From Camelus ferus (taxonomy: Eukaryota): a stretch of 64,000 bases of DNA. Shown here one piece after another: positions 47,150 through 60,300 of this stretch. The DNA lies in contig NC_045716.1 in NCBI RefSeq assembly GCF_009834535.1, forward strand, positions 29,450,001 to 29,514,000, given 5' to 3'. Under the pieces are notes generated by a model that was given only the letters and a program-made list of their open reading frames with translations, had not been told where the DNA came from and did no database searches. The position numbers were made by a program, and so were the translations under genes. Position 1 is the stretch's first letter. Every line of letters starts with the position of its first letter.

Positions 47150-48720
47150 CCCCTAGCCCTCTCCACTGTCCCCTCCTCTGTTTCACCCTCTCCGACACCC
47201 CACCCCCTACAGTCCCCGCGTGGTGGCTGCCGCCAGAGCCACGTGTGCCCGTGCCCCGCAGGCGCACAGGGAGAGAAGCGCGGCCACGCCTGGCCCGGCC
47301 ATCATTTCCCCGGGCGGCCAAGGCGTGGATTCGCGGACAGCGGCCCCTTGGTGCGCCCAGACGGGTCCCTGAGCGCCAGCGCCGGGAGCACGAGCGCAAG
47401 GTCGGAGCGCGCGGTGGAGGAGGCGGCCCGCGGGGTGGTACCAGCGCCCTGCGCCTCGAAGGTGGAACTGCGGCTCAGCTGCCGGCACCTGCTGGACCGC
47501 GACCTGCGACCCGCTCACAGCCCGACCCCAGCGTGGTGCTGCTGCTGCAGTCGCAGAGCCAATGGGTGCAGGTAGGGGCGAGGGCGGGGGTGCAGAGGGA
47601 AGAGGCCTAGGGATGGACGGTGGTGCCAAGTGGGGACTGGTGTCCTGGAGCTGGGGATGCAGAGACCGAGGTGGGTGTGGGAAGCTAATGGGGCCCAAGG
47701 CAGCGGCGTCGGAGCTGGGGCTGAGCTCAGGGTCACGGGTGGGGTTACCGGGTCTAGGGGTGCGTGCCCAGGAGCTGTGGCAGTGGAGGTGTCCGGAGTG
47801 GGCTGGAGGCGGACCTGCACAGGGAGCTCCAAGCAGAGAGAGGAGCGCTGGAGTGGGGGGTGCGACCCAGGGTTGGGGGGTGCCTCCGGGGCCAGAGAGG
47901 CGCCGCAGGAGGCCTGCCTAAGGGGCAGAAAGGAGTGGAGGGGCAGGGGTTGGACTGGGGTCGCCGGTCCCTCTCCGCCCGAGGGGCAACCAGGAGCGCG
48001 GCTTTTCTGCCGGGTCCTCCTTCGCAAGGCGGAGGTGCCCGGACCTGGAGCAGGGAGGGCCCGGAGGGGAGCGGCCGACCGGGGCCGGAGCTCTCTGGGA
48101 GCCGAGGACTTGATCTCCGAGACTGGGACGCCCCATCTGCAGGGCCCCCCAGCCTGTCGCTTCTCCTGTTCTTGAAGACTGGCGGGGTCCCCAGGGACCT
48201 CGGCGCGTGGCCAGGGCAGCCTGGCGTGTGTGGCCAGGGTTGGGGACCTGGCTCTGGGCGGGCGGGTCTCTGAGCCACGGGGCTCCCCCTCAAACCTCTC
48301 GTCCTGGGAGTGCCCGGGGCGCCTGCGCAGGAGCGGGGCTTCCACGGGGCCCGCTGCCCTCGTCATCCCAGCCCAGCCCAGCCCTCCCCGCGGGCGGGTC
48401 GCGGCGACGGCTCCGGGCGCTCCGCGCCGGACGAAGCGCTTTCTCGGTCAACATCTCACGCGAGACGCGTGGCTTCACCTCGAAAGAGCAGGAGATCGGG
48501 GCGCGAGCCGAGGTCAGGGGCTGAAGGGGCTGGTGAGCAGGGGAGCGGGGGCCCGAGCCCGCGGCGGCTCCAGGCTCTCCCCGCCGGCGGGCCCCTCCCG
48601 CGCTCTGGCGCCCCCTGGCGGGGTGGCGGCACGCGGGGTGGGGCGGTGGCGGGGGACGCGTCTGGGCCCAAGAGCCCAGGGGCTCGGAGGCCAGGAGCGC
48701 CGCGACCTTCTGATCCGTGA
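47150..48720 (+). promoter_or_regulatory. CPNE7 CpG island (promoter, exon 1, start of intron 1)
   Basis: Dense CpG at about 47200-47580 and 48200-48720. Confidence 0.7.
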
Positions 48721-49849
48721 CTGTGTACGGTCTCTTGTCATCTCCGGACCACCAGAGACAGATACCTGCTTTTGGTTTCACTGTCCAGGGTTCCAATCCG
48801 ACTCTGTCCCTGACTTGGGGTGCCCTTGGGCCCCACCCTTCCCCCTTCTGAGCCTGTTTCCCCATCTGCGATGTGGGTGGCCTGGGGAGTGAGGAGTGAG
48901 GGAGGGTAATGACGCCCCAGGGGCGGCCTGGAGCCTCGCAGCATCTTGTGGGGTGGGGTCTTCCCACAACACAGTCTGGAAGCAAGGACCACCTGAGGGC
49001 ATATGGGAGGGGAAGGGGACCCTGAGCTGCTGCCGGCGCTGCCAGCAGGTGGACAGAACCGAGGTGGTCCGGAGCAGCCTGCACCTGGTGTTCCCCAAGG
49101 CCTTCACGCTCGGCTACTGCTTTGAGGAGGTGCAGAAGCTGCGCTCTGAGGTCTATGACGCCCAAGGGCCCAGTAGCCTGAGCTGTCGGGGAGACAACTT
49201 CCTGGGGGGCGTGGAGTGCACCTTGGGGCAGGTGAGTGCCCATCCCCTTGGGAGGGCGGGGGAAGGATGGGCACTTGGGCAGGTCCTGAGGGCTGGCTCT
49301 ATGGCAGTGGTGGCATGGGGACAATGAATAGATGCCAACTGTGTACCAGCATGACCCCCAGCGCTGCCTGTCTCCACAGCTCCTTCTCCTAAAAAGGTTA
49401 TTTTTAAAAATATGTAATTTTGAACTGGGTAATATGGATCCAAATCCAGAAAGTGTGATAGGCACACATGGAAGGCTTCCCTCCTTCTCTGTCTCCAGGG
49501 CCATTACATTCTTCTGCAGAGACGTCTTCTCACTAGAGCCAAGGAACGCGTGCTCTTTTCTCTATATTTATATATTAGAAAACACAAATGGCATACACTG
49601 TTCTGTAGCTTGCTTTCTTCACTTGAATGACACAAGGGAGCCCTTCCCGTGTCTCTCCCCGTGGCCTGTTGGTCCAGCTCCCACCTGAGGGACACTGTAT
49701 CCTCCACTCCAGTCGTCCGTCAGCTCCTCCATTATCAGTGTGACAGGAGTGCCTGCTCTCGCCACCAGCCAGGCTACTTAGCGCTAGGCTCTGTGCTGAA
49801 CACTCCGTGTGTCACACGTTAAATTCTTGTGAGGGCTACAAGGGCACTG

Positions 49850-57340: not shown

Positions 57341-60300
57341 TCTTCACAGCTAAAAGGTGACCGTTCCTGTCCATGCCCTGATGGCTTTTCCAGTTAGAAC
57401 GAGGTTGAGATACGGCCTTGCCCTGATGGGGGGCGTGTCCTTCCAGCTGCGACCCTGCCTTGCCTCACGAGGTCCCTGGGCTGAAGAAGCCCAGTGTGTG
57501 TCCAGTAGGGCCCGCGACTGGAGTCTGCTGCCCTCGCCCTCCAGGTGGCCTCCACGCTGTCCTCTGATCCCTGGGAGGGGCCAGACTCCAGGAGGTGCTC
57601 AAGGCTGCCTCTGCCTTGTCGGTGCTCAGATATCCATCTTAGCGGAGCAGGGTTGATGCTGGCAGACGCTAGGGGAGCGTCCCGGGACCCACCCCCAACG
57701 CCTTCACCTGAAATTCCCTCCCACCATCTCTCTGTCCCGTGGTGAGGCCCCGCCCCATCTCACTGATGCACATGGCCTCCCAGGGCCCCAACTGTGATGG
57801 TTTCCAAGCTCAGGTGAAGCTTCCGTTCCAGGTGGTGATGGAGACACAGGGCTGTGAGCTCTAAATGGGCCCTGGCACTACTCTCGGGGAGGCAGGCGTT
57901 GGGGGTTCTGCTGAGGAGGCATGTGGGGCAGCTCCAGTCCCGGTCAGGAGACTGTTCACCCCACCCTCGGGTCGGGGGCTCAGAGAGGGCAGCCTGCTGG
58001 GCTATCTGTGGGCTCCCTCCCTGGAGAGATGGTGCAGTGCTGGGTGCCCACTTGGCCGGGCTGGGCCAGCTGGTGGACAGCCCCCTTCTAGGGCTGCAGG
58101 TGCAGAGTGAGCCTTTCTTCTCCTGTGTGTTTTCTCTCGTTCAGGTGTTTAGTAATGACTACTGAGAGGTTTTGTCTTTTTAACCCTGGCAATTGACTTT
58201 TATTTGAAGCAAGTCCCAGTCTGTCTTCTTGGCAGATGCACTGGGCACCTGGCCAGGCTAGACCAGGGTGTGTCTTCGCCAAAGCCCATTCCTTGAATCT
58301 CAGTGTCTCTTCAGAGTGTGGGGGCCCCTTCCCACCCCAGGCCCCACCCCTCCTCCTCTGGCCTCAGACCTGGGTCAGCCTGGGTCCCTGGGCCTTGGGG
58401 TCCCGTCTGTAAGATGTGGGCTTTCTGGCATCCTCGGGTCAGAGGCAGGGCGGAGGCAGGCAAACGTGCCCCCTTGGGGGGTGCTCCCAGATCAGCGTGG
58501 TCACGCGAATACTTAGGCTCCACAAAAAAGCTCCTGGAGCAGCTTGGAAACCGTGGGTTGAGGGACGTCTGTGGTCTCCCCTGGCCATCTCGGGGAGAAG
58601 AGCTGGTCGGTGGACTTGGGGTTTGACGGGGGAGGTGCAGCTGCCCTGAAGGTCTCCACAGCCCCTCTGCCCTGTGTCCCCAGCAACACCATGTTCTGCT
58701 GATCCCGACGGATGGCGTGGTGACCAACATTGTGGACACATGGGAGGCCACGGTGCGCACCTCCCACCTGCCCATGCCCATCCTCATCTTGGGGGTGGGC
58801 AACACCGACTTCACCAACACGCAGCTCCTGGATGGGGATGGCGATGTCCTGCGCTCCCCCCGGGGCGAGCCTGCCCTGCGGGACATTGTGCAGTTCGTGC
58901 CCTTCCAGGAGTTCAGGCACGTGAGTGCTTCCCATTGGGGCCAGGGCGGAGGGCCAGGCCTCAGGCAGTGCCGGGGAGAGATGGGCGCCTTCCTGCCTGC
59001 CCTCAGCAGCCTCAGCCCCTGCAAACCTTTGCGTCATGAGAACCTCAGGCTGACACCACAGAGGGCAGTGCACCTCCACATGCAGGCTCTCCAGTGGCTT
59101 CCAAACATCTGTGACACAGTGAGATATGCAGGGTGTGGGGCCCACTTACAGCGTCCACGCGGGGCCTGGGCCCCGGGACCTGCCCTCCCTCCCTGCCTCC
59201 ACCCGCTGCCCAGAGCAGGGTCACACCCACCCAGAGGAGCCCTGAGGGGCCTCCCAAAGTGCCAGCTGCGTCTGGCTGCCATAGTCACTGTGGTCCCATT
59301 TTGCCCAGCAGTGCCGTGAACAGGCCCATCTGGCCACCAGCTGAATTCTTGTTTGTGGTCACAAGCTAGGGCAGGACCACTAGAGGATGGAGACCGTAGT
59401 GTGAACCTGGCTCTAGGAGGGGGCAAGAGGTGTGAGCCATGGGGGTGGAGGGGTGGACGACAGAGGACGGGGAGGCCCCGGCTGGAGACACTCAGTGCAC
59501 CCCCAGCCCCGGCCCTGCAGGCAGCCCCCTCAGCGCTGGCTAACAGTGTGCTAGCCGAGGTGCCCAGACAGGTGGTGGAGTAGTACAGCCACGGGGATCT
59601 GCACCCAGGGACTGCAGCGCCTACGCTTGAGAGGCCAGCCTGGGCTCCACACCCTGAGGGCGCCCGGGGCGCGGCCAGGACTGTGTTCCCAGGCTCCGTC
59701 TCCAGCATCCTTGACCCTGACTTCCTGGAGGCCCCCTGTTCCCCAGGCCAGGCCCACCTCGTCTCCTGTGACCCTGCTGCCTGGTGGGCCAACCTCCAGG
59801 CCCCAGTACTGAAAGGTGGGTAGCCCCCAGCTGGCACACCTGCTCTGCCCCAGCCAGGCGGGTGGGAGGGGTCCTGGGGGCGCGGAAGGGGGATTGGGGG
59901 ATTCCTGCTTTGCATCTGGTCCTCATGGGGGTGGGTCAGCAGGCAGCACCCCCATCTCTGGGATAACCTGGGCCCCCGACTCCTGTCCCTGTAGCCAGAT
60001 CCCTCCTTGTCCCAGCTGCCCCCCAGCTGCTCTCCCCACCGTGTCTGTGGGTCTGCAGGGCTGGGGGCATTTAGGCAAAATACAGTGTCATCTGGTGCTT
60101 GAAGAAGTGTTGTGCCTTTATTGCCCCCCAGCCTCAGCAGAGGACTGCACTCACGGGAGGGGCGGTGCCCAGGGCGGGGGAGCGTCTTGTCAGGTTGACC
60201 GCGTTCTTCCTGGACTGAGCCAAGGGCCCTCCCAGGAATGAAAGGGTGCGGTGGGGGTGTTGGTGCTTGACCCCAGGAAGGGCCAGAAGCAGCCTCCCAT

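Follow-up and report, generated by a model that had tools for sequence, protein, structure and literature searches.

The gene CPNE7, which codes for the calcium-sensing protein copine-7, was analyzed in a 64-kb stretch of Camelus ferus DNA (NC_045716.1, positions 29,450,001–29,514,000), hereafter called the window. All coordinates are positions in the window, and CPNE7 lies on its + strand. The locus is very probably the camel's own gene, standing at its original position with its introns kept and no longer coding for protein. The pseudogene is real, well supported and of old date in the genus Camelus, and the gene from which it derives is strongly conserved. A preliminary description of the same stretch had read CPNE7 as apparently lost, a unitary pseudogene of the camelid lineage, and for the genus Camelus the reading as a multiply disabled pseudogene at the ancestral locus was borne out by lesions present in two camels and by a relaxed constraint. 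Eleven disabling changes were found by comparison with the intact genes of cattle, horse, bat and tenrec, so that the camel gene shows the several frame- or splice-destroying mutations by which a unitary pseudogene is recognized.

Identity and orthology of the locus

The 15 coding exons of CPNE7 are all present, together with the introns, between 47,390 and 59,640, downstream of RPL13. Six-frame translation of the region from 46 to 61.5 kb gave copine-like pieces, in order and on the + strand. Pfam C2 was recognized in the frame of exon 2 (E 1e-5) and Pfam Copine in exons 10, 13 and 14 (E 2e-7 to 2e-24), while the second C2 domain was recognizable by alignment to cattle only. The locus has thus the arrangement of the copines, two C2 domains followed by a copine/vWA domain.

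When the 80-residue translation of exon 14 was compared with 1.8 billion representative proteins, it led to a 480-residue protein with a 97% match, which carries the database name 'Copine-7, partial [Camelus dromedarius]'. With this dromedary model and cattle copine-7 as queries, the matches were copine-7 of many vertebrates, nearly all the named ones being copine-7. These named matches, the identical exon structure and the alignable introns (72% identity between camel and cattle over 1.75 kb) assign the locus to CPNE7 rather than to the paralogues CPNE4 and CPNE6. CPNE7 lies 6.7 kb downstream of RPL13, which is also the human gene order. With its introns and the RPL13 neighbour both retained, the locus is the orthologue rather than a retrocopy, and on the same grounds a pseudogene of processed or duplicated origin was ruled out.

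Exon map and disabling lesions

The CPNE7 loci of cattle (NP_001179342.1), horse (XP_023493297.1), a bat (Eptesicus) and tenrec were used as references, their exon structures being solved so that the spliced translation equalled the database protein exactly. The gene was single-copy at this position and intact, with 15 coding exons and no lesion, in all four outgroups, where exons 1–14 have the same sizes (174, 183, 75, 75, 84, 90, 99, 87, 60, 134, 55, 52, 134 and 237 nucleotides). The whole protein is 89–94% identical among intact species, and cattle and frog copine-7 are 80–81% identical. Each cattle exon, with its flanks, was aligned at the DNA level to the window, which yielded the following map of the camel exons.

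47390–47571, +, exon 1: 182 nucleotides versus 174 in the outgroups; donor GT intact
49049–49231, +, exon 2: 183 nucleotides; frame and splice sites intact; Pfam C2
51874–51948, +, exon 3: 75 nucleotides; intact
52155–52229, +, exon 4: 75 nucleotides; frame intact; first two residues changed from VL/VI to ET
52872–52955, +, exon 5: 84 nucleotides; premature stop; the SKSDP loop reads SKPDP
53287–53374, +, exon 6: 88 nucleotides versus 90; acceptor lost and frameshift
53547–53645, +, exon 7: 99 nucleotides; intact in the window
53914–53998, +, exon 8: 85 nucleotides versus 87; frameshift
54336–54395, +, exon 9: 60 nucleotides; frame intact
55043–55176, +, exon 10: 134 nucleotides; frame intact; the conserved DFTASNGD reads DFIASNGG (DFIASNGD in dromedary)
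55543–55597, +, exon 11: 55 nucleotides; donor altered
56014–56065, +, exon 12: 52 nucleotides; intact
56129–56262, +, exon 13: 134 nucleotides; frame intact; Pfam Copine
58684–58920, +, exon 14: 237 nucleotides; frame intact; 70% protein identity to cattle; Pfam Copine
59521 to about 59640, +, exon 15: premature stop and one-base deletion

Frame and splice sites are retained in nine exons (2, 3, 4, 7, 9, 10, 12, 13 and 14). The disabling lesions lie in the other six, as listed below.

47390–47392, +, exon 1: start codon ATG changed to ACG
47499–47505, +, exon 1: seven-base insertion resembling a tandem duplication
after 47518, +, exon 1: two-base deletion
52908–52910, +, exon 5: TAC changed to TAA, codon 182 of 549
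53285–53286, +, exon 6: acceptor AG changed to AC
after 53300, +, exon 6: two-base deletion, frame shifted
about 53950–53958, +, exon 8: net two-base deletion, frame shifted
55598–55599, +, exon 11: donor GT changed to GC in a weak context (GGG/GCGCTG, the slash marking the exon end)
59581–59583, +, exon 15: TAC changed to TAG, codon 534
after 59607, +, exon 15: one-base deletion

The count of eleven refers to separate events, the change in exon 8 aligning as two one-base deletions. No other in-frame ATG was found in the frame of exon 1. Three further extra bases in this exon (one at 47411 and two at 47414–47415) are in-frame and harmless, and the paired +1/−1 gaps that the local aligner placed in exons 9 and 15 were substitutions, not indels, and were left uncounted. 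The preliminary description had reported at least seven lesions in exons 1, 5, 6, 8, 11 and 15; all six exons proved to be damaged. Its estimate of about 17 residue differences between camel exon 2 and the human protein was found by alignment to be exact, and the same exon differs from cattle at 14 of 65 residues.

The coding sequence is thus disabled by the loss of the start codon, by breaks of frame in exons 1, 6 and 8 and by two premature stops, and its splicing by the destruction of one acceptor and the weakening of one donor. The damage is older than the divergence of the window's camel from the dromedary, and after inactivation the whole coding sequence has drifted at a nearly neutral rate. 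The loss may have been tolerated through the paralogues CPNE4 and CPNE6, which, together with the mild knockout phenotype, would make CPNE7 dispensable.

Lesions in a second camel and in sequencing runs

The dromedary assembly GCA_000803125.3 aligns to positions 44,366–63,382 of the window with 99.13% identity (88 mismatches and 15 gaps). The two independent assemblies differ by 0.46%, and all eleven lesions are identical in both. The divergence between them is several times the within-species diversity of camels, and they most likely represent different Camelus species. Of 1,663 exonic bases, 6 are different between the two camels; outside exons the difference amounts to about 0.47%. Among the exonic ones are two amino-acid replacements and one new stop, private to the dromedary (CAG changed to TAG at codon 260 in exon 7, position 53643, where the window has CAG). 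This private stop and the other exonic changes indicate that the decay continued after the two camel lineages separated.

The presence of the locus in sequencing runs was followed with sampled 31-mers, which were looked up in Logan contigs; the DNA runs concerned number at least 14 and come from five studies, with two species labels. Between 52,800 and 58,800, the fraction of the 620 sampled 31-mers present in these runs was 0.99–1.00, and between 47,508 and 52,799 it was 0.97–0.98 of 546. Judging from the dromedary assembly and from these runs, the lesions are real and fixed rather than artefacts or rare alleles. A polymorphic null allele was ruled out, since every run carries the lesions and so does the dromedary.

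Two neighbouring genes served as controls:

38815–40685, +, RPL13 coding exons: open and contiguous in five of five pieces; locus marker and intact control

Both RPL13 and SPG7 had been described beforehand as free of lesions. This holds in full for RPL13; for SPG7 it holds at the level of a spot check, in which the exons with the AAA and M41 motifs were open.

It could be argued that the gene is in fact intact and that its apparent lesions arose as errors of sequencing or assembly, the region being GC-rich. The G+C content of the region is 56–66%, exon 1 being very GC-rich, and the support for the lesions comes from two assemblies and from contig 31-mers. Yet errors would hardly recur as eleven identical lesions in an independent assembly that differs by 0.46%, nor does this explanation agree with the recovery of 0.97–1.00 of the sampled words in at least 14 DNA runs or with the clean adjoining RPL13. 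Moreover, the excess of amino-acid changes and the shift of omega described in the next section are independent of indels. The explanation by errors is considered effectively refuted, what probability it keeps being negligible.

Relaxed selection and date of inactivation

Selection was analyzed on a 541-codon alignment of camel, cattle, horse, bat and tenrec in the reference frame, with gapped codons and stop codons masked. Camel and cattle copine-7 differ at 100 of 534 residues, versus 35–61 of 541 among the four intact species. At 451 positions invariant in the other four species, camel is changed at 71, while each intact species shows 11–27 comparable private changes.

A branch model of the Goldman–Yang type (F3x4, five taxa) was fitted to estimate the ratio of non-synonymous to synonymous rates (omega). 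The background omega was 0.046, which, together with the intact state of the gene in cattle, horse, bat and tenrec, indicates constraint in the outgroups. On the camel lineage omega was 0.336 (profile-likelihood interval about 0.22–0.54), i.e. selection was relaxed sevenfold relative to the background. Twice the log-likelihood difference (2dlnL) was 69.8 for two ratios versus a single one (p 6e-17) and 16.7 for the camel omega versus 1 (p 4e-5). A branch test of this kind had been suggested in the preliminary description, and its outcome agrees with the loss proposed there. When the two halves of the protein were considered separately, the camel omega was 0.30 for the C2 half (exons 1–8) and 0.35 for the vWA half (exons 9–15; vWA background 0.038). 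Since the two halves are equally relaxed, there is no sign that a vWA-only product has been preserved.

To estimate the date of inactivation, the camel branch was divided into two phases, the first constrained and the second neutral. The neutral share is then (0.336 − 0.046)/(1 − 0.046) = 0.30, with a range of 0.18–0.52. The branch length was taken as about 62 million years, the separation of the camel lineage from the other even-toed ungulates. The inactivation of CPNE7 would thus have occurred roughly 19 million years ago, with a range of 11–33. The two camels separated far more recently than this, which fits the finding that all lesions are shared. The range overlaps published estimates of when Old World and New World camelids diverged, and it lies on both sides of that event; a family-wide loss, shared by llamas and alpacas, is a candidate reading.

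Evidence for and against remaining function

In addition to the support for the lesions being limited to assemblies and contigs, four observations weigh against a complete loss of CPNE7. An open frame persists through exons 9–14. The camel omega is significantly below 1, which fits a branch that was first functional and then neutral, and could also reflect residual constraint. The locus may still be transcribed. Finally, the DNA in which a second CPNE7 copy could have been seen comprised the 64-kb window and one 19-kb dromedary locus.

With respect to transcription, RNA-seq contigs of the reproductive tract (with labels including 'reproductive system metagenome') contained 14–67% of the words sampled between 47508 and 58800. 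The two stretches sampled are more than 80% intron, and these words could come from unspliced transcript or from carried-over DNA.

Taken at face value, the RNA-seq matches and the omega below 1 are what would be expected if a shortened protein were still made, for instance a vWA-only product of exons 9–14 or one spliced around the broken exons. Exons 9, 10, 12, 13 and 14 keep frame and splice sites, and GC donors can work. This is nevertheless highly improbable, because the relaxation of the C2 half is matched by that of the vWA half (omega 0.35 versus a background of 0.038), on which ground a surviving vWA-only product was rejected. Exon 14 is 70% identical to cattle, versus 89–94% for the whole protein among intact species; the DFTASNGD motif is altered, the donor of exon 11 is weakened and exon 15 is truncated. 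In addition, exonic differences between the two camels, the new dromedary stop among them, are about as frequent as intronic ones. It seems reasonable to interpret that CPNE7 no longer yields a protein at this locus.

Other copies and database models

The designation of camel CPNE7 as a unitary pseudogene implies that no working copy exists elsewhere, and this is probably so. The alternative is that the locus is dead but a functional duplicate or retrocopy lies at another place in the genome, for which the extent of the data (the 64-kb window and one dromedary locus of 19 kb) leaves room. When 5.8 billion proteins were searched with the dromedary model, the matches included no further camelid copine-7-like protein. 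This result weighs against a copy because an intact one should outscore cattle. Considering also that each of the four outgroups has one copy of CPNE7 at this position, a functional copy elsewhere is very unlikely.

The only camelid copine-7 proteins found were KAB1260585.1 and KAB1260586.1 ('Copine-7, partial [Camelus dromedarius]'), which derive from the same dromedary locus as the assembly compared here. Unlike a genuine gene product, they are ab initio models with an invented 5′ exon (window 48372–48515); they skip exons 1, 5, 6, 7, 11 and 15 and translate an intron and the frameshifted exon 8. They are pseudogene translations, unfit for use as orthologues or as protein evidence.

Another peculiarity of database models concerns ruminants. 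Several ruminant RefSeq models named 'dipeptidase 1 isoform' (436–477 residues) share a 90% cluster with copine-7, and the same cluster also holds a true hippo DPEP1. This suggests the existence of CPNE7–DPEP1 read-through models in the annotation of cattle and sheep. DPEP1 is not present within the 64-kb window.

Possible CPNE7 decay beyond the genus Camelus

Large protein searches gave no alpaca or llama copine-7 among their matches, and pig and cetaceans did not figure in the best 120. Using as query a 286-residue open frame that spans exons 7–8, a single distant contig was found, in Logan run SRR19906152. Positions 1–1955 of this contig contain CPNE7 exons 7–11 of another mammal and align, through the introns, with camel, cattle and horse at 72–77% identity. 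In this contig CG stands in place of the AG acceptor of exon 8, exon 10 has lost 16 bases and with them the ASNGD motif, and exon 9 was not detectable. None of its lesions is in common with camel, so that this decay of CPNE7 may be independent.

A wider scenario can be put forward tentatively, and at present it is rather doubtful: the loss would go back to the last ancestor shared by all living camelids, and at least one other mammal, the source of the contig just described, would have undergone a separate decay of CPNE7.

Comparison with known systems and significance

Camel CPNE7 shares with a functional mammalian CPNE7 the locus beside RPL13, the 15 coding exons and the C2–C2–Copine/vWA order. 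It differs in having no start codon, three frame-breaking exons, two stops, damaged splice sites and the 71 private changes at otherwise invariant residues. The mammalian unitary pseudogenes recovered in gene-loss screens (PMC7671337) offer another parallel, with an orthologous position, kept introns, shared lesions and a raised branch omega, although in camel no change of trait has been tied to the loss. The loss of camel CPNE7 adds a solid new case to a familiar class of events, gene loss. The preliminary description knew of no prior report, and none of a CPNE7 loss was found in the full texts that were searched (for pseudogene, gene loss and camel), though annotation flags or entries in loss catalogues may exist.

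Concerning the function of the gene, Cpne7 knockout mice are viable, with altered rapid eye movement (REM) sleep after stress and minor changes in cecum, skin and bone, and in human CPNE7 shares 74% identity with CPNE4 and 71% with CPNE6 (PMC10968396). Selcopintide, a peptide derived from copine-7, is undergoing clinical tests aimed at dentin regeneration and dentin hypersensitivity (PMC12361636).

CPNE7 belongs to the more tightly constrained genes, with an omega of 0.046 across placentals, yet it is dead in camels, which thereby constitute a large-animal natural knockout of a gene promoted for dentin formation and for stress-related REM sleep. Camels form normal, heavily used teeth without CPNE7, which argues against a universal requirement for it in tubular dentin. 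A link between the loss and dental or neural biology, as raised in the preliminary description, is speculation. If a camelid-wide loss and a second, independent decay were true, mammals would have dispensed more than once with a strongly conserved 'dentin-inducing' calcium sensor, and natural knockouts could serve to test whether it is essential for odontoblast differentiation, as has been proposed.

Other features of the window

Apart from CPNE7, a small nucleolar RNA and several repeat-like elements were observed in the window.

39207–39290, +, C/D-box small nucleolar RNA MBII-202: full length, 79 bits, between two RPL13 coding exons
25461–26493, G-rich minisatellite: 46-base unit, about 23 copies, 95% matching, between SPG7 exons
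21558–21697, run of N: 140 bases, just upstream of the SPG7 exon with the Walker B motif
50502–50575, +, tRNA-model match in CPNE7 intron 2
16696–16768, −, tRNA-model match
62506–62577, −, tRNA-model match

The minisatellite yields long spurious open frames in three frames. The tRNA-model matches, weak to moderate with scores of 30–44 bits, are probably tRNA-derived short interspersed elements rather than tRNA genes.

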